A DNA stretch of 64,000 nt from Adineta vaga (Eukaryota; Animalia; Rotifera): contig CP075493.1 of NCBI GenBank assembly GCA_021613535.1, forward strand, positions 6,944,001 through 7,008,000. The letters run 5' to 3'. The notes under the pieces are model-generated. The model was not told the origin of the DNA. It saw nothing but the letters and a program-made list of their open reading frames with translations, and did not search any database. This document shows, piece after piece, positions 36,757-45,909 of the stretch (its first letter is position 1; every line of letters starts with the position of its first letter). The position numbers and the translations under genes are program-made.

Positions 36757-38429
36757 ATGTCGAAAGATAGATTAAAAGACTTGCAAAAAACTGTAAGTTA
36801 TCACAAATAGAAAAACTCAGTTCTTTTCAATCAATTTCATATTATATTTTTCTTTTTATTTGAAGAGTCCATGGTCACGTGTAACCTATCGAAGATTATC
36901 ACGACAAGTATAAATATCTTTAATTATCCACAAAAAAAGGAATTGCTTAGAATTTAGATAGAAGAATAAACTAAACTACTAAATCAGAGGGCGAGTTATA
37001 TAATGTTGTGTTGCTATTGTTGTTTTGTTTTGTTTTGTTTTGTTTTGTTTTGTTATTGAGCATGTTTAACTTTAGTTACATTTGATTTGAAAATAATATC
37101 AATCATTATTTTTCTTTTTTAATAATAGCTTCGAACTTCTGACTTACCAAATGCTACCAACGATGGTGGTGGTCAATTCATTTCCATTGAAATGGAGAAG
37201 GAAGGCAATGTAGCGGAATTTTTAGCTCAGGTAAACATGATATTGTTACTTTCGTTTGCCATATATATATATATATAGAGCGATTGAAATTATCATTTAG
37301 ATTGATTTAATTCGTTTACTTATCGATAAAATCGAAGAAGATGCTGGAGAAATCTGTCAAATCCATAAAAAAATACTTGAACCTTTGCCCGATCCAAGTA
37401 AAAATATCATTCGAAAACGAAAAAGACAATATTATTATATTCATTTTTTGTAGAACTTTCAGAAAATCTGGATAATAAAACAGCTGATATAAAAAAATTA
37501 GCATATGATGTTCAAACAAAACTTAAAAGTATCCAGATCTCGATCTTTTATTGAAATTTGATTAAAAGATGATTCTTAACTGTTTAGAACTGGAGCAAAT
37601 ACAAATCGATCAAACTGATGCCGATAAAGCAAGTGCTGTGTGGCGTATTAAAGAAACGCAGATATTTAATCTTACGTACCGTTTTCGTCAAGTTATGCAA
37701 AAACATAATCAAGAGTTCGTTTCACACCGGGAACGATGTAAAAAAGTTATTAGCAGTGAACTTGAAATAAGTATGTAACGATCGATTATTGAAAATTGAA
37801 ATCATTTCACTTTTTCAATAGCTGGTATTCGAAGAACTGATGAAGAATTAGAAGAAATGATTGAAAACGGATTTCCAGGAACATACAATTTCTCTGTAAA
37901 TTTTATCTATTTATTTTTCTCTCTACATTCGCACTTTTTCTTCTCATGTAGATTATGATAGATGTTGAGAAAGCTAAACAATCCCTCAACGAAATTGAAG
38001 CTCGTCATCGTGACATAACGAAACTTGAAACTTCATTAAAAGAATTACATGCGATGTTTCTTGATTTAGCTGTGCTCGTAGCAACTCAGGTATTCATCAA
38101 TTGTCTTTCAACATATCGATTGATAAAATCATTTCATTTGTTCATATGAAAAAAGGGTGAAATGATTGATAATATTGAACATAATGTTTCAAAAGCTGTC
38201 GACTTTGTGGGACTTGCAGCTGAACAGGTCTATAGCGCAAAAGAATCGCATGAATCAGCTGTAAAAGTAAAGAAAAATTATGATTGATGAAAACACATTT
38301 CTATCTTCTTTTTTTTTGTCGAAATAGAAAAGGCTCGTTGTATACATCATTATAATTGCAATTGTTTGTATTCTTATTCTGATCCTCGCTGCCTATTTTA
38401 CAACTCAAAAGAAATTATTAGGAAGATAA
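36757..38429 (+). CDS. Plasma-membrane (Qa) syntaxin paralog, divergent, ~10 exons
   Basis: [10 protein letters not shown]-peptide, Habc helices, [78 protein letters not shown]. Confidence 0.9.
37017..37054. repeat. (TTTTG)n microsatellite in a syntaxin intron
   Basis: About six tandem TTTTG units read directly. Confidence 0.9.
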
Positions 38430-39799
38430 AAATATCATGATAGATATTTTTCATTCAATGACGTATTGATTTTTTTTTAATTTGTCGCTAAAAATATTAT
38501 CGTTGTATTTTTATTCAGTTTTGTCTTTTCAATAAATCAAGTTTTTTTTTGCTTTTTTTCCTCGAACTAGATCTATTTAGATTCTCAAATTTGAATGTGT
38601 CAAGCATAACAGGTAAGGGAAAGATTAGCTTTCAAACTATGACTATCGCTGTAAAATTCATGTTTCTCTCTTACATAATTTTAAAAAATTAATTTCTTTG
38701 AAGATTTTATTTGATTATGAGATTAAATCTAAATGTACATTTCCGTAGTTGAATTATTAAATTCTATACAAATTTCAATGTCATACATTTATGTCAGCTT
38801 AAAGTAGGTTTTCAATAGATTAGTTAATGAAACTAAAGCTCTTTGAAAGAAACATTTCTTCTTGTTCATTCTTGTTGAAATAATCAAGCTTATCATATCG
38901 TAGACATTTATGAACAAAAGCTGTGCATGACTTTTTAATGTTTTCAGAATTACTAAGATGAAGAACACTGTGTATTGTTCGCTTTTGTTTTTCAAAAAAA
39001 GTCTAAAGCAGATTAATTTTCCATAAAGAAAATTCTAATCAAGTTGTACTTCTATTTATCTTCGAAATAGCAGCGAGCTGAATGATGAAGACTATCCGAA
39101 GTTCAATTACTTTATCTACCAATAACAACAACTTCAAAAGAATTTTCTTTCGTAAAACTGTTTAAACTCATTGACATCAGGTATATATATATATGATCGT
39201 ATTTATGCATGGTTGAATATTTTTAATGATACTAAGCTAAATTTAGAAGAGTCTCATCATTTATAATACGGTGATGAGTAAAAAATACAGTGCAATTACT
39301 GTTATCATAAAATGTGATCCTTTGGTTTTATTTCTTTTCTGATCTTGATTGAAAGAATCGATTTATTTATGATGTCTTTAATATAATAAGTACATTATTT
39401 CACCCACGTATATTCAATGGCAACGAATTCATGTCATGACTCATAGATCGTTTCTGATTGGTCGAAAGATTTTATTAACAGTGCACAAATGATTTGTTTA
39501 TGTATGCATTGAAGAAAAGAAAAAACTGATGCTGTCTTCAATGGCATCTTATTACGAGTAATCTTGCTATACTGTGATTTTTCGCTTTACATCAAATAAT
39601 GATTCATCGATGTTTCTTTTTCTGTATAAAATGAATTGAGTGGAAGAGATTTTTGTCGTCAAATGTTTTGATTCAATTTTTCAATGAAAATAGTGTCACC
39701 TATTGAATTTTGTTATTGTTGTTGTTGTTGTTTTTTTGGTTTCTTTTTTAGATTTTCAAACAAATGTCTAATAGTTTGAATCAATAATATTCCTATTCC

Positions 39800-42700
39800 A
39801 TGACAAAAGATCGATTGCCCGCTTTACGGGCTGTAAGTTTTTCAAACGAAATATTTATGTTTTTATTTTCTCGAAACTATGATTTTTTAGGCGCAAAATG
39901 CGGAAGATAGCGATCCGGATGCCGCTTATGTCGCTATTAATATGGAAGATAACAGTCGATTTATGTCCGATTTTTTTGCTCATGTCGATTCATTACGAAC
40001 GAATATCGATAAAATAAGCGAATTGGTAGATGAAGTTAAACGTCTTCATTCAACAATTCTTGCTGCACCACAAGCAGATGATCGAACAAAAGAAGAACTT
40101 GAAGAGAAAATGGCCGATATTAAAAAATTAGCTAATGGTGTTCGACAAAAATTGAAAGGTAAGTGAAAAACAAACAAACAAAGAAAAACTTAACAAATCT
40201 CTGTATACATTTCCTTATAAAATACTTTTGTCAAAAACTAACTTTAGCAATGGAAACTGAATTAGAACAAGAAGGAAATGAAAATGCATGGCGTACAGCC
40301 GATATACGCATACGAAAAACTCAGGTTTTCTATCTATCTGTAGTCAGTTTGGGTGTTGTTTAGATATTATTTCGTTTTCTTTTTAAATTTCAATGTTGTC
40401 TTGTTTCGTCATCCTTTGTTGTTTATCCCCTTCTTCTTATTATTATTACAGAAATGGAACAACATCAAGAACAATCTCAGGCAACATCTAGCAAAACTCA
40501 AGCACAATTACGAATTGAAAAATCACAGGTAGTATAGAATAAATAAGTTGACGACACGACACGACACAATACAATTATTCATCTTCATCTTTCCCCTCGT
40601 CTTTGTTTGATGTTAAAAAAAACTTTTCGATTGAAAATACAAACAAACATGAGATAACTTTTCTATTTAGCATGCAACATTATCACGTAAATTTATTGAC
40701 GTAATGAATTCATATCGAAATGCAGAAATTGAATACCGAGAACGATGTAAAGCTCGTATTCAACGTCAACTTGAAATCAGTGAGGAATTCTAACTATTGT
40801 GTCGTGTCAAATATCTATATGCTTTTCATGTTGATCTGTCTGTCTGTCTTTTCGTCTGTCAATTTGTTTTTATTAGTTGCATAATCATTTGAAAAAATTC
40901 AATCAAATTATGATTGATTATCATCTTGCTAAAAGAAATTATCTCGAAGAAAGTAAAAAAAAATTAAAAAAACAAATAGAATTGAGTGAGTTTGAAGCTA
41001 AAATGAAATCATTTATTTTGTTCTGTGTCTTGTTTTCTGCTAAGTCTCTTTTTTTACTTCTCTATATGTATGTTTTATGCTTTTGATGTTGTTTTGCATT
41101 TATGTTGTAGTTATTTGTTTTAACACAAAAATTTCGTGATGTGATGAACGATTATAATCAAGTTCAGTTGGGTTATCGACAAAAATGCAAAGAGAGAATA
41201 CAGCGACAGCTTGAGATCAGTGAGCTTTGTTTTGCTTCTATTTATTATTATTATTATTGATGTTTACAAAATTAACGAAACACAGATTTAATCTGATCAA
41301 TTTTATGTTTTTAGCCGGACGATCAGTAACTGAAGGAGAAGTAGAAGAAATGTTAGAATCTGGTAATCCATCTGTATTTACACAAGGCGTGAGTTGAAGA
41401 ATATAAAAGTTGGAAGATAAATGTGGATGGTATCTTCTTTCTTTTGTTTTCTTGAAGATTATGGTTGAAACCGCACAAGCTAAACAATCATTAGCGGATA
41501 TTGAAGCTCGACATGGTGATATTATGAAATTAGAAAAGAGTATCAAAGAATTACATGATATGTTTATTGATATGGCTGCACTTGTTCAAACACAAGTAAA
41601 TTCTATGAAATTATATTTTTGTGAATGTATGCTTTTGTTTTTTTTCATTCAAGGGTGAAATGATTGATCGAATTGAATATAATGTTGTACAATCAGAAAA
41701 TTTTGTCAAAGCTGCAAGTACAGATACGAAAAAAGCTGTTAAATTCCAAAGTGCAGCTCGACGGGTAAGTTTTCATCCTTATCTAGTAGTTGAATGTTTT
41801 GTAATAATGCATGTTTATTGGGATCTAATACGCTTTATTCTAATACGTAAATACGCTTTTGCTTGCTTATTCACATTGCTCTCACATACACATATATATA
41901 ACGCGTTCTTCTCTTCTGATTTAAAATAACATCTACTGATCTATTATTCATGATTTTACTGATCAACTTGGATTGCTAATCATTTTTCATCAATGAACTA
42001 CATCATTAATCTTATTTAGAAAAAAATTCTGCTTATTGTATGCGCGATCATAACAGTGGTCATTGTTATACTCGTAGTTGTCATTTATTTTGTGGTTAAA
42101 AATAAGACTGAATCATCCGTAGCAGCCGCAGTAACTACAGCAGCTCCTGGAAAAAGATAGATAGATTTTATCTATGCATACGAAAACGCACTAAACATAC
42201 TAACGGCATGGCTATGAATAAGCACAAAAAATAAAACATATTACTATTCTTATTATTATTATCATTGTTATTATTATCATTTTCTATTTTGTACAAATCT
42301 TCTTCTTATTTTGTTTTCTTCTCATTTTAAAGAAATTATTTATTATTATTGGGATTATTGTGGTCGTCGTCATTGTATTGGTGATTATTTTAGCAATCGT
42401 TTTCGGTCGACAAAAATAGTTTCTCTATTTTCAATAATCTCCTTTTGATTTTTCTCTTTAAACCATATGTATAATGTATACATTTCCAAGACCGTTGATC
42501 GGCTTCTTCAATATTTTCTTTATTTGTTGTTTTTATATTTCACACGAAGGAGAAAAATATGCGAAATTTTTTCGATTTGTACAAATTTATACATTCATGG
42601 TCTTTCCAGCTCACTATTTCAAATATGCTACAGTTTTTGTTTTGTTGTGTTGTATTGTATTGTCTATGTTTGCATGAGACTTAGTATCTTATTCATTTAT

Positions 42701-43441
42701 TTCTATTTTTTTCTCATCGCTCTCTCTCTGTCTCTCTCACATCGCTTGTTAATTTGTTATGTTTATTAAATTACACACGTATTTATATAAAAAAAAAGAA
42801 ACACATCATATATTGATATTGTTTTGTAACGCAACACACAGAAAAGATACAAGTAAATCAATATATTTGTCATGTGCTTTCGTTGATTAATAAGGAATAG
42901 ATTTGTCATTATCTTGAAATCATTAAACATGATTTGTTCTTCTGTCTGTATGTCGTTCATATGTCTTCCGGTTCGCTGCCGATGAATATTGAATTATTTA
43001 TTCTCCTTCTTTTTTCCTTCTTCTTCATCATCATCGTCGTCGTCTTCTTTTCGTTATTATTGCCAAGGGACAGACTGACGTAAACACTTGAAAACCAACA
43101 AATCGTATTTTTGTCATAGAAAAAATGTTGCTTACTTACTGTCGCTGGAATCGTCTCAGCACTACTACTTCTTATCGTAACTGGTCTTGTTTTAAATGCA
43201 ATTCGATAAAAAAAAACAGAAGATCACGTATGAAAAAAGAGAATCAATTATGCAATACATATCAATCGATTTCGCTAGCATTTTGTTTGCATATTATGTT
43301 GTCTGTTTGTTGTTGAAACTATAAATGATTTGAATACTGAATCTTTGCTTTTAGAAAAAAATCATTATACTTATTTGTTTGGCTATTATTATTGTTATTC
43401 TTGGATCAATGGTAGCTGGTTGGCTTGGTATTAAAAGATAG
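39800..43441 (+). CDS. STX1: Syntaxin-1 (unc-64/Syx1A ortholog) with mutually exclusive exon clusters and four alternative terminal exons
   Basis: Exons 39800-39832, 39891-40158, [3a 40248-40324 | 3b 40452-40528], [4a 40671-40779 | 4b 40877-40985 | 4c 41111-41219], 41315-41388, 41458-41595, 41654-41764, [8a 42020-42160 | 8b 42333-42419 | 8c 43120-43209 | 8d 43355-43441]. MTKDRL; [17 protein letters not shown]; [11 protein letters not shown]. Confidence 0.95.
40549..40574 (+). promoter_or_regulatory. Putative splicing docking element TGACGACACGACACGACACAATACAA
   Basis: Complementary to 40795-40808 (14 bp perfect), 40394-40411 (16/18) and 41018-41034 (14/17), counting G-U pairs. Confidence 0.6.
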
Positions 43442-44381
43442 CGTAAGTTTAATCATTTGCTATCAACTTTTCTTCTAAATATAGAAAGTCTTAAATAAAG
43501 CTTGAGGTGTAATCTGTGAATCCATTTGAGTTATGATTAAAGAAAACATAATTTACCTTCATTTTCAAATCGTACTAGTTGATCTTTTCTTATTCGTTTA
43601 GGGCTGATTTATGTGATCGTATGATAACAATATACAACAATGTACCGATTCAAATATAAATATATATATATATATATCTTAAAATCAAATAGTTAATTCT
43701 TAGTTCTCAATTTGTCTTTTCAATATGCAAAAAGAAATGTTCTTTTTGTTCTTTTCTTTCTTTCTTTCTTTCTTTTATGTTTATGTAACAGTGCTTGTCT
43801 GTGTATTAGAATGTACTAAATGTTCAATCGGTTATACGAATTGAATACATATAGATGAAAACTTCATAGAAAAATAAATCTTTCTCTTTTTTTGTCGCTT
43901 CATGTCTACGTATGTCATGTCAGTCAAGTCAGATGAGTGGATGTTTTTGTTTCAATCCTCATGATTTGAAGATAATTCCAGTTTTATTTTATTTCGATAA
44001 TTATGCAAAAAAAAAGATTTTAAATATATATATATTATATACACATATATATCAAAACTAATCTCAATTGTCGCACTTTTATGCCTTTTCGTGTGTGCAC
44101 ATTATGCGTGCCCTTTTCTAACATGAATGTCTTCGTTTATTTCCGTGTTTGTCTGTTTTTTTTAATCACAAATGTATTACTCTCACATAGATTATTATTT
44201 TTTCCATAAGCAAAATAAAGGTCGACGATTACATCACAATTTTAGATGCATTCAAATTTCTTTGATCTTTTCGTTTTATTAAATGAAAATGTAATACAGA
44301 CTAAAAATTCATGTGAAAACAAAACAAGTTCATTCTCGTTGATGAGATTATGTCGTTTTTCTTTTGTACAAATACAAATGT

Positions 44382-45909
44382 TTACTTTGATTTTATAAAT
44401 GGTTCAAGCCATTTTTCATGTGCTGAAATTTTAGCATATACACCTGGTGCAATACTTGGAGTGACTGCTGCACCATATGATGTTATACCGAGAACAACCC
44501 ATCGGCCATCAGATTGACGAACTAATAATGGACCACCGGAATCACCACTCTAAATATATCTATATGTACATGGGATTTCTTGGAAGCTTTTGCTTACCAT
44601 AGTATCTGCTACTCGATTGTAATCACCGGCACAAACTTCTGTATTTGGATCGAAAACACTGCCATAAGAACGACGACATTGATTGTCATCAAATACACGG
44701 ACTTCAGCTGAAAAAGAAGAGATGAATGATCGAGTTTTTTTTGCAGCTTTACGAAGTAAAAAGATATTGTCCTTCTGTAAAGGGTTACAATTTGACCTTT
44801 CTTTTCTTGAGAACTATCAATTCTATAATAAATTAATGACGGAAAGTTATTGATATGAAAAGACACTTGTCAACATGATCATCAGAAACTGTTCTTCAAA
44901 GATATTTTATGTATGTAGGTGGTATTTTCTATGTACTTTTGTCATTGTTTACTTGTCAGTTCTTTTCATTTAATGTTATCAGATACTTCTCAATGTCATC
45001 TCTTTATCTTCGAACGATGAAAGACGAGACGAAAAATTGAAGGCGATTAGTGATATGATTTTTACGTTAAAATTGTTTACCTTGTTGTAATGTAAAACTT
45101 TTAAACATATTAGTTATACTATTTTGTGAACTATCACCCCATCCAATAATAATACCAGTACGATTAATAAGATCTCTTCCTTGACCGATCGTAGCATACG
45201 GCTGATATGGTAAACAGACTGAATTAATTTTTGGTCCGTAAAGTACAGATTTACTTAATTTTAGTATGGCTAAATCATTTTTACAACAATTTTCAAATTT
45301 AGGATGACGATGTATAGCACTGATCGAATAATAATTCATTGGATTTAATTTACCAAGTATTGTATGTACACCAATGATTGCTTTCATTTCATTTGCTGTT
45401 GTATGTGTTAAACAATGTGCAGCCGTCAATACTGTATTTTCATTGAGAAGTACACCGGCACAACTCCAACCATAACGAGGACTTGTAAATAATGATACCA
45501 TCCATGGCCTAACAAAATAAAAAAGAAATAAGACAAGTCAGATGAATAATACTCTTTCTTTTTTCTTCCTATACCATGTATGCCAAAGAGCATCATCACC
45601 ACCTTTAATTTTTGAAATAACAGCAGCTTGTTTATTGTAGATAGCTGGTTCATCATCTGCTGCATAACCACATCCACGTGATGTCATCGCGTGATGAGTT
45701 GATTCTGAATGTCCCATGAAAAATGCTCGAAAACGATAGAATAATTCCAAAAGATAATCTTTGATTGTTGCTGCTGTTTGAGAGATTTTATCACCTACTT
45801 TATTGAAAAATTGTCCAATATCAGACGTTGGTGCTGCCTCAATTTGAGTAATACCATTGAGAAGAAGGATGAATAGAATAAGACTCATACTGAGAATTGT
45901 ACGAGACAT
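44382..45909 (-). CDS. Secreted trypsin-like (S1A) serine protease
   Basis: Signal peptide, CG...SK-IKGG activation site, CAGVLLNENTVLTAAHC, NDLAIL, GDSGGPL, PGVY. Confidence 0.93.

Follow-up and report, generated by a model that had tools for sequence, protein, structure and literature searches.

The window analysed here, a 64,000-nucleotide stretch of the genome of the bdelloid rotifer Adineta vaga, contains a gene for the plasma-membrane Qa-SNARE syntaxin-1, from which a main mRNA containing exons 3b and 4c, and a minor mRNA containing exons 3a and 4a, are produced. These exons belong to two adjacent clusters, together encoding the end of the Hb helix, the Hb-Hc loop and the Hc helix, within an alternative-exon region of approximately 1 kb (Table 1). 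The explanation that best accounts for the data overall, and that we regard as likely, is a syntaxin-1 gene with two mutually exclusive clusters, coupled by an intron duplex, such that canonical and general forms of the protein are generated.

The gene was identified through both profile and sequence similarity. Exons 2, 4a and 4c matched the Pfam profile PF00804 (Syntaxin), and exon 7 matched PF05739, all above the gathering scores, with a full-length ortholog (P0191) matching both profiles. A bdelloid ortholog (P0003), located via exon 2, to which it is 93% identical, retrieved Syntaxin-1A or syntaxin of molluscs, brachiopods, arthropods and nemerteans at 56-63% identity. Exons 2, 5, 6 and 7 were 90-100% identical to their Adineta and Rotaria orthologs, and the C-terminal membrane anchor is encoded by four alternative hydrophobic terminal exons.

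Table 1. Features of the syntaxin-1 gene, numbered from the first nucleotide of the window.
Feature	Position	Strand	Evidence and properties
Exon 1 (start codon, N-peptide)	39800..39832	+	sequence; joint 39832->39891 (GT..AG) in 4/4 RNA runs
Exon 2, constitutive (Ha-Hb)	39891..40158	+	268 nt, phase 1 at end; PF00804 44 bits
Exon 3a, canonical-type alternative	40248..40324	+	77 nt, phase 1->0
Candidate upstream partner of docking element	40393..40412	+	overlaps one UGUUGU; duplex dG -18.1 kcal/mol
Exon 3b, divergent alternative (main form)	40452..40528	+	77 nt, phase 1->0
Putative docking element, intron 3b-4a	40558..40571	+	14 nt; perfect complement of 40795-40808
Exon 4a, canonical Hc helix	40671..40779	+	109 nt, phase 0->1; PF00804 36 bits
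Putative selector element	40795..40808	+	15 nt past 4a donor; pairs with docking element, encloses 4a
Exon 4b, Lys-rich third alternative	40877..40985	+	109 nt, phase 0->1; window-type ohnolog only
Conserved GU-rich element, immediately 5' of 4c	41076..41110	+	two UGUUGU; kept in all window-type orthologs
Exon 4c, divergent alternative (main form)	41111..41219	+	109 nt, phase 0->1; PF00804 38.7 bits
Exon 5, constitutive (linker)	41315..41388	+	flanking joints, both sides, in all 4 RNA runs
Exons 6 (41458-41595) and 7 (41654-41764), SNARE motif	41458..41764	+	RNA joints; PF05739 on exon 7
Terminal TM exons a 42020-42160, b 42333-42419, c 43120-43209, d 43355-43441	42020..43441	+	4 alternatives

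An original prediction, made from the DNA alone, had proposed both clusters, and re-reading the sequence confirmed its coordinates for the five exons and the peptides it quoted. All five are flanked by an AG acceptor and a GT donor, each is open solely in the predicted frame with matching phases, and 4a, 4b and 4c each end in A directly before GTGAG. The exons within each cluster resemble one another in sequence more than would be expected by chance: both 4a and 4c match positions 95-130 of the PF00804 profile; a profile of 4b orthologs aligns with that of 4a and 4c from end to end and in register (hhalign E 2.6e-6); and 3a and 3b have 10 of 25 residues in common, in addition to equal length, phase and position. 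The exons of each cluster are homologous, arranged in tandem, and equal in both length and phase, as expected of mutually exclusive exons. No RNA contig contained two exons of one cluster, although rare forms may escape assembled contigs, and the exon lengths of 77 nt and 109 nt mean that either double inclusion or skipping within one cluster shifts the frame. The data support the view that each cluster is a set of true alternative exons within a single syntaxin-1 gene. The description of 4b as strikingly Lys-rich held in that it encodes eight lysines, but it is not more basic than 4a (K+R 9 vs 8), in which arginine takes the place of lysine.

Matched exon pairs in RNA

Splicing was assessed using spliced assembled contigs from four RNA runs (X1, X3, X5 and X6), originating from three studies. 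The GT..AG joint between 3b and 4c was present in all four runs, as was the joint between 4c and exon 5, and a single 610-nt contig in X6 spanned exons 2, 3b, 4c, 5 and 6. The joint between 3a and 4a was found at this locus in X1, and at its ohnolog in X1 and X3, meaning it was detected in two runs, at low contig depth. At the 3' end of the gene, exon 7 was joined to terminal exon a in X1 and X3, to b in all runs, and to d in X1, X3 and X5, with no joint to c in the four runs.

We infer from these joints that the exon choices of the two clusters are coupled. Alternatively, each cluster might be spliced independently, generating up to six Habc forms (24 when combined with the terminal exons), of which only the commonest survive assembly. 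Contig assembly does lose rare variants, such that the absence of mixed forms is not provable from contigs, and public annotation-derived protein models of other bdelloids include both 3b+4a (e.g. P0170, P0189, P0193 and P0212) and 3a+4c (P0187) combinations. However, no mixed joint (3a-4c or 3b-4a) was present among the contigs of the four runs; both of the exon 3 to exon 4 joints observed were matched pairs, in two gene copies; and the transcript-derived bdelloid proteins were 3b+4c in 17 of 17 cases. The mixed models, by contrast, derive from genome annotation, and several of their siblings (P0157, P0158, P0161, P0162 and P0269) are artefacts that continue past the 4a donor into the intron, and are spliced from a cryptic donor within the selector element. 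The exon combinations in the public bdelloid models of this gene form an arbitrary mix, and independent choice in the two clusters is quite improbable. The figure of 24 isoforms given in the original prediction disregards the apparent coupling, and joints were observed for only three of the four terminal exons. The same five artefactual models imply a spacing of approximately 40 nt in Rotaria, which would exclude 4a and 4c sterically from joint splicing; this idea was rejected, as the introns measure 91-111 nt in the DNA.

Age and selection of the alternative exons

The ohnolog, on contig 4, carries 3a, 3b, 4a and 4c, a 2x2 arrangement with no 4b. The same four exons are present in nine further genes from seven species, comprising Adineta ricciae, A. 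steineri, four Rotaria species and Didymodactylos. The distribution of the exons among these genomes shows that the 2x2 arrangement is older than both the bdelloid genome duplication and the split of Adineta, Rotaria and Didymodactylos. When the conservation of each exon in other rotifers, a check proposed alongside the original prediction, was assessed, dN/dS was between 0.02 and 0.21 for all five alternatives. Exon 3a was found in 11 of 11 bdelloid genes examined, with a dN/dS of 0.14; 3b, with a dN/dS of 0.19, varies in length between orthologs (68, 71, 77 and 80 nt) through whole-codon differences only; 4c has a dN/dS of 0.21; and 4a has a dN/dS of 0.02, its protein being identical in both ohnologs despite seven synonymous changes. 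Of 36 residues, 24-30 in 4a match syntaxin-1 of other phyla, compared with 18-22 in 4c and 8-11 in 4b. The closeness of 4a to other phyla, and its low dN/dS, support 3a and 4a as the canonical, ancestral-looking pair. The canonical form alone was found in the Seison protein and in unidentified transcript-derived relatives, while variation among nemertean isoforms was confined to exon 7 and the transmembrane exon.

Exon 4b has a narrower distribution, occurring solely in five genes of Adineta and Rotaria, all of them of the window-type ohnolog. Orthologs of 109 nt were found in A. ricciae, A. steineri and R. magnacalcarata, and one of 97 nt, in frame, in R. sp. Silwood1; the 733-nt intron between 4a and 4c in Didymodactylos contains no syntaxin-like open AG..GT segment. 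The exon is under purifying selection (dN/dS ~0.13; pS 0.52 vs pN 0.10; Fisher p = 1.5e-4), and is therefore probably a real coding exon, with its expression so far unseen. The comparisons between orthologs show that it arose in one ohnolog lineage, and then evolved as coding sequence. A 40-aa in-frame query, consisting of 4b and four read-through codons, retrieved four more genomic copies, as mis-called short ORFs on genomic contigs, but no transcript containing 4b; these copies are 96% identical to 4b of the window and identical to one another, while the read-through of the downstream intron differs in each.

The contrary reading is that 4b is unused as an exon, being a relic of duplication or an instance of non-coding conservation, leaving the gene with the same working 2x2 set as its ohnolog. 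No joint into or out of 4b was found among the contigs of the four runs, in which the sole RNA over the exon was one unspliced 170-nt contig (40804-40973, depth 4.5, X3), nor does 4b occur in any transcript-derived protein. The exon is also missing from the ohnolog, all five contig-4-type genes and Didymodactylos, has no Pfam match alone, and is both AT-rich and poly-A-rich. Yet several properties of 4b argue against this reading. Firstly, five genes from two families carry it with an open frame and undamaged AG and GTGAG sites. Secondly, its sole change in length is a 12-nt in-frame deletion. Thirdly, pN is five times lower than pS. Fourthly, it is unchanged in four more genomes in which the adjoining downstream intron diverges. 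Lastly, it keeps the hydrophobic core positions common to 4a and 4c. Disuse of 4b is unlikely. The original prediction envisaged its own failure as 3b, 4b and 4c never being spliced in and being degenerate in relatives; instead, 3b and 4c are spliced, as the main form, and 4b is conserved, albeit with no joint.

Complementary intron elements and GU-rich motifs

Conserved complementary sequences in the introns probably steer this choice of exons. The introns 3' of 3b and 3' of 4a contain two 11-nt islands that are exact reverse complements of each other, and this core is invariant in 9 of 10 Adineta and Rotaria genes, the tenth having two adjacent altered bases (one mismatch and one G-U), within introns that otherwise have 67-76% mean column identity and many gaps. 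The duplex in the window is a perfect 14 nt (dG -25.4 kcal/mol), and that of the ohnolog is 15 nt (dG -24.8), with neither energy being reached by any of 300 shuffles. These energies were calculated in windows around the docking element, as RNAduplex applied to whole introns sums many weak contacts, and is uninformative. The helix is present in the minimum free energy fold, the centroid fold and the alignment consensus, while the predicted fold of the 302-nt segment in its entirety is only slightly more stable than those of shuffled sequences (z = -1.55).

The extensions of the core differ by ohnolog type, at opposite ends of the helix, and are paired in each, with two single-sided changes giving G-U pairs; this comparison was anchored on the 11-nt core by a script, as a MAFFT alignment of all ten genes places the selectors of the two ohnolog types 4 nt out of register. 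No double changes occurred within one ohnolog type, nor inside the core, meaning covariation is limited to two lineage-level events. The candidate upstream partner of the docking element forms a weaker duplex (dG -18.1 kcal/mol in the window, reached by 16-18 of 300 shuffles), and across the ten genes its position was inconsistent, with energies of between -12 and -20 kcal/mol that were matched by between 3 and 90 of 300 shuffles (p 0.01 to 0.3). A selector 3' of 4b, looping out both 4a and 4b, was considered and rejected, the best duplex (-17.3 kcal/mol, 47 of 300 shuffles) not being significant. Didymodactylos lacks the docking and selector elements, and has different candidate stems only.

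In the mechanism we propose, the docking element, approximately 30 nt past the 3b donor, would pair with the selector, approximately 15 nt past the 4a donor. This duplex would loop out 4a and bring the 3b donor near the downstream acceptors, thereby favouring 3b-4c joints and, where 4b is present, 3b-4b joints; were the duplex unformed, 3a would join 4a. Duplex formation may be prevented if the docking element is engaged by its weaker partner upstream, or by a GU-rich-element protein binding the UGUUGU clusters 5' of 3b and 4c. As a 3b donor handed to the next acceptor would be expected to join 4b, rather than 4c, 4b would have to be suppressed by other means, and might represent a rare or conditional third Hc. 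The function of this arrangement would be the expression, from one gene, of a canonical and probably neuronal syntaxin-1 (3a+4a), and of a general form whose Hc surface differs (3b+4c). In the original prediction, such forms would also differ in autoinhibition.

The GU-rich motifs suggest a different view of the same exons, in which a trans-acting protein of the CELF/UNC-75 type sets exon choice via the UGUUGU clusters, and the duplex is incidental. In cells expressing such a protein, 3b and 4c would be repressed together, resulting in 3a+4a, while the complementary islands would owe their conservation to something else, for example to their being CA-rich and GU-rich sites bound by proteins. 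Across 11 genes, 49 of 56 UGUUGU motifs are in the introns directly 5' of 3b and 4c. The motif matches the core of (G/U)UGUUGUG, the element found 5' of exons repressed by neuronal CELF/UNC-75 (PMC3627589), and in C. elegans the choice of a neuronal or a non-neuronal isoform of syntaxin is made by UNC-75 (PMC4946901). Regulation of this type would also generate coupling without a second selector. However, independent protein binding sites do not predict islands that are exact 11-nt reverse complements with ohnolog-specific paired extensions, and the motifs here, in which UGUUGU is followed by U or C, fall short of the full 8-mer. This view is rather unlikely, although the two mechanisms are not mutually exclusive.

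A more specific, and more tentative, version of the duplex mechanism is that the element in the boundary intron is a coupling device. Paired downstream, it would remove the canonical Hc exon and lead to 3b with 4c (or 4b), whereas unpaired, or paired upstream, it would lead to 3a with 4a. Kept in both ohnologs, the device might enable one gene to serve as both neuronal and general syntaxin, with 4b reserved for an unsampled cell type or condition.

Relation to known systems

The Habc domain controls whether syntaxin-1 is closed, and bound by Munc18, or open for SNARE assembly, and is normally regarded as a fixed part of the protein. Tandem duplicated alternative exons give rise to tissue-specific plasma-membrane syntaxins in vertebrates, namely syntaxin-3A and -3B and the splice forms of syntaxin-2, although the known vertebrate events replace the C-terminal half, containing the SNARE motif and anchor, rather than an Habc helix. 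Several proteins are likewise produced from one syntaxin-1 gene in the case of the nemertean Lineus (isoforms X2-X9) and C. elegans unc-64 (A and B), the latter having one neuronal and one non-neuronal isoform, between which a CELF protein chooses (PMC4946901). The rotifer gene shares alternative transmembrane exons with both, but whereas their events affect the anchor and the final part of the SNARE motif, the rotifer exchanges the end of Hb and the Hc helix. The Habc region was invariant among the isoforms of Lineus, Tubulanus, Macrosteles and Mizuhopecten, and a literature search found no published description of exon swapping at the Hb end and Hc helix for any syntaxin.

Docking and selector systems have been described in Dscam and srp (PMC4691838) and in ATE1 (R1, R3 and R4; PMC7797038), with a model for their evolution (PMC6071210). 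In these, exons within an RNA loop are skipped, and competing pairings pick exons (PMC4691838, PMC7797038). The rotifer gene resembles all three in having conserved complementary intron elements, with the looped exon predicted to be skipped, and resembles ATE1 in that an element situated between exons might pair either upstream or downstream. It differs in that the docking element is at the boundary of two different clusters, with one strong selector only; the loop would remove the first exon of cluster 4 and favour the last exon of cluster 3, thereby coupling clusters rather than choosing within one. No earlier report of this mechanism in Rotifera was found in the literature. A known two-cluster gene is also similar, the rotifer gene having both two clusters and UGUUGU-type GU-rich intron elements 5' of the exons that would be repressed in neurons. 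Relative to that gene, the putative rotifer motif comprises just the core 6-mer, and its clusters adjoin each other, with a predicted RNA duplex as an additional link between them.

For research on splicing, the locus is small, deeply conserved and duplicated within one genome, and looks like a coupled choice between two clusters, involving a mutable RNA duplex and a candidate protein motif. For the biology of syntaxin, two or three versions of Hc in an otherwise identical protein constitute a natural allelic series, which could be used to address autoinhibition, the handling of Munc18 and Munc13, and cell-type-specific exocytosis. Selection has maintained each version of Hc from before Adineta and Rotaria diverged, and two of them from before the genome duplication. 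If the boundary intron element is indeed a coupling device, then an entire face of one helix in the Habc domain of syntaxin would be swapped as one block, by a device that both ohnologs would have retained while at least Adineta and Rotaria radiated.

Exon structure and use

The syntaxin-1 gene surrounding the two clusters is complete, comprising exons 1, 2, 5, 6 and 7 and four alternative terminal exons, each encoding a membrane anchor. Sequence reading and translation bore out the coordinates, lengths and phases originally predicted for 3a, 3b, 4a, 4b and 4c, all of which have an AG acceptor and are open in the coding frame only. Mapped onto the textbook domains of syntaxin-1A, exon 3 presumably spans the Hb end, the Hb-Hc loop and the beginning of Hc, and exon 4 the bulk of Hc together with the first linker residues. 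Sequence searches used either single exons or database proteins as queries.

Exons of the syntaxin-1 gene, in window positions, with pairwise Nei-Gojobori dN/dS
Exon	Position	Strand	Features and basis	dN/dS
1	39800-39832	+	Sequence read	
2	39891-40158	+	Sequence read; Pfam match, Syntaxin N-terminal domain	0.05
3a	40248-40324	+	77 nt, phase 1->0	0.14
3b	40452-40528	+	77 nt, phase 1->0	0.19
4a	40671-40779	+	109 nt, phase 0->1, end A/GTGAG (slash, exon end); Pfam match, Syntaxin N-terminal domain	0.02
4b	40877-40985	+	109 nt, phase 0->1, end A/GTGAG	0.13
4c	41111-41219	+	109 nt, phase 0->1, end A/GTGAG; Pfam match, Syntaxin N-terminal domain	0.21
5	41315-41388	+	Sequence read	0.035
6	41458-41595	+	Sequence read	
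7	41654-41764	+	Pfam match, SNARE domain	

Exon use was assessed with assembled contigs from four public RNA runs (X1, X3, X5 and X6, from three studies) aligned to 39000-44400. These contigs are spliced at GT..AG and leave the introns of the exon 3 and 4 clusters almost uncovered, and are therefore derived from RNA. The 3b-4c joint occurred in all four runs, with the highest contig depth, itself a poor measure of abundance; a single 610-nt X6 contig runs through exons 2-3b-4c-5-6. The 3a-4a joint was found for the window's own copy in X1, in a contig identical to the window, and for the second gene copy in X1 and X3, in a contig assigned to that copy by its exon 2 end and by single-base differences. 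Neither mixed joint, 3a-4c or 3b-4a, was present among the contig joints of the four runs, although contigs lose rare forms, and therefore a missing joint does not prove absence. The expectation that the alternative exons are spliced in thus held for 3b and 4c, but 4b had no joint in the contigs of the same four runs. Its RNA cover consists of one colinear X3 contig (40804-40973, 170 nt, depth 4.5), unspliced across the 4b acceptor. Among other bdelloid sequences, all 17 from transcript contigs of approximately 1 kb (Logan or JGI sources) were 3b+4c. Genome-annotation models of bdelloid syntaxin-1 mix every exon combination with obvious intron read-through artefacts, and therefore provide no evidence for or against coupling.

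At the 3' end, contig joints link exon 7 with TM exons a, b and d, but none leads to TM exon c (43120-43209) in the four runs, despite its good acceptor and open frame. A GT..AG intron (43443-43601) lies in the 3' UTR, approximately 2 nt past the stop codon of TM exon d, and is removed in X1 and X3 (joint 43442->43602). Unspliced colinear contigs of X1, X3 and X5 cross the intron that separates exon 7 from TM exon a (41735-42356) at about the depth of the spliced joint, and may represent intron retention or an alternative 3' end replacing the membrane anchor. A GAT/GTC-type low-complexity sequence at 43017-43047 attracts many unrelated contigs, giving a depth spike with loose ends on both sides; contig depth at this point does not represent the syntaxin gene. 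At 41077, in the intron before 4c, X1 and X5 contigs run upstream into up to 255 nt of unrelated sequence without an AG at that point, which may reflect a chimeric contig or a repeat.

Duplication and conservation of the clusters

A DNA search of the window's genome (100.8 Mb in six contigs) located a paralog, flanked by the same genes, on contig 4. This ohnolog has 3a (77 nt), 3b (68 nt, three codons shorter), 4a and 4c (both 109 nt), all with intact splice sites; 4b is absent from it, the 4a-4c intron being only 101 nt. The 4a peptide is identical between the copies despite seven synonymous differences, while 4c differs at approximately ten residues.

A second, tandem syntaxin gene lies directly upstream of the window gene (37600-38430, + strand, probably from ~37000). 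It has single versions of exons 4, 6 and 7 and one TM exon, and its exon 4 shares 44% identity with 4c. In Adineta ricciae, A. steineri and Rotaria, too, this paralog comes before the window-type gene; a match lying 3.3 kb upstream of the contig-4 copy points to the tandem pair being older than the genome duplication. Downstream is a trypsin-like serine protease gene (44400-45600, - strand); the same protease follows both ohnolog types in other bdelloids, and synteny is therefore conserved.

Bdelloid syntaxin-1 proteins were retrieved with exon 2, and one of these was used to query a large protein collection. Sorting the segment from exon 2 to exon 5 revealed 3a-, 3b-, 4a- and 4c-type sequences in Rotaria magnacalcarata, R. 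socialis, R. sordida, R. sp. Silwood1, R. sp. Silwood2, A. ricciae, A. steineri and Didymodactylos carnosus. Nine further genomic loci were exon-mapped. Exon 4b was present in all four window-type genes, which have the tandem paralog directly upstream (A. ricciae, A. steineri, R. sp. Silwood1 and R. magnacalcarata), and in none of the four contig-4-type genes (A. steineri, A. ricciae, R. magnacalcarata and R. sordida). The Didymodactylos locus has 3a, 3b, 4a and 4c, with no recognisable 4b. Four database "proteins" of 58-70 aa (P0332-P0335) are mis-called ORFs on genomic contigs of other bdelloids, which begin at an internal Met of 4b and run through its donor into the intron.

Exon 4b is not degenerate in these relatives, retaining both its frame and a low dN/dS. 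In 4b, the window and R. magnacalcarata differ at 52% of synonymous but 10% of non-synonymous sites (Fisher p = 1.5e-4), and the sole length change is the in-frame loss of 12 nt in R. sp. Silwood1; length changes in 3b are likewise of whole codons only. Four further public genomic copies of 4b agree fully with each other throughout the matched part, where they show 96% identity to the window's 4b, while the read-through intron following them differs in each. Alone, 4b has no Pfam match, yet a profile of its orthologs aligns end-to-end and in register with a 4a/4c profile (hhalign E 2.6e-6), and the hydrophobic positions common to 4a and 4c are kept. Given this low dN/dS, in-frame change, stability and hydrophobic pattern, 4b has probably been translated as an exon through most of the period after Adineta and Rotaria diverged, although the four RNA runs gave no joint for it. 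It is lysine-rich as described, with eight Lys, but is no more basic than 4a, where Arg serves instead. Since 4b and 4c are preceded by a common intron motif, 4b may have originated, in one ohnolog, when a segment that included 4c was duplicated.

Candidate basis of apparently coupled exon choice

The sole long, perfect, G+C-containing inverted repeat of the cluster pairs a docking element in the intron after 3b (40558-40571) with a selector 15 nt past the 4a donor (40795-40808), enclosing exon 4a. Its energy of -25.4 kcal/mol was reached by none of 300 shuffles, nor was the -24.8 kcal/mol of the 15-nt equivalent in the ohnolog (0/300). Although the introns of these two copies otherwise align poorly, both arms keep an 11-nt core. 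Among ten Adineta and Rotaria genes, nine share this core unchanged, and the tenth has a single mismatch and a single G-U pair. The helix is longer than the core on one side in all five window-type genes (by three pairs in four genes, and two in R. sp. Silwood1), and on the opposite side, by three pairs, in all five of the contig-4 type. It is recovered in the minimum-energy and centroid folds and in the alignment consensus. In Didymodactylos, which lacks the docking and selector sequences, other putative stems could form around 3b (-23 kcal/mol) and 4a (-19 kcal/mol).

Exons within the loops of such pairings are skipped, and competing pairings can determine exon choice (PMC4691838, PMC7797038). 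The duplex would loop out 4a, causing it to be skipped, which fits the dominant 3b-4c product. However, were the duplex acting alone, the 3b donor would go to the 4b acceptor, yet 4c is used. An upstream partner in the 3a-3b intron, which would loop out 3b, is a weak candidate (-12 to -20 kcal/mol, reached by 3-90 of 300 shuffles, at positions inconsistent among genes).

A second layer may involve UGUUGU, of which the introns immediately before 3b and 4c contain 49 copies and all other introns of the region seven (11 genes). The neuronal CELF protein UNC-75 of C. elegans represses exons that are marked by an upstream (G/U)UGUUGUG (PMC3627589), and it favours the neuronal over the non-neuronal syntaxin isoform (PMC4946901). 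By analogy, a CELF-like factor could repress 3b and 4c jointly, which would both couple the clusters and yield a neuronal 3a+4a form.

Relation to known syntaxin splicing

Known alternative exons of syntaxin-1 encode the C-terminal part of the protein, and database isoforms of nemerteans, insects and molluscs vary there only. In the nemertean Lineus longissimus, isoforms P0232, P0234, P0236, P0250 and P0257 have two versions of the exon 7 equivalent (the end of the SNARE motif) besides several TM exons; the two versions form a mutually exclusive pair distinct from the rotifer exon 3 and 4 clusters, albeit in the same gene family. The UniRef entry P0273, a "barley predicted protein" labelled Hordeum vulgare, is in fact an animal syntaxin-1 and probably a contaminant of the barley cDNA library; over exons 3 and 4 it is almost the same as the transcript-derived sequences P0270-P0275.

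A literature search found no alternative Habc exons in any syntaxin, nor any bdelloid gene with mutually exclusive splicing. Docking-selector pairing and the control of exon clusters by CELF proteins are both well-established mechanisms, their causal role here being predicted from sequence. What appears to be new is the protein region affected, Habc, and the phylum; the predicted position of a docking element between two different clusters, through which their choices could be coupled; and the natural duplicate of the whole device within one genome.
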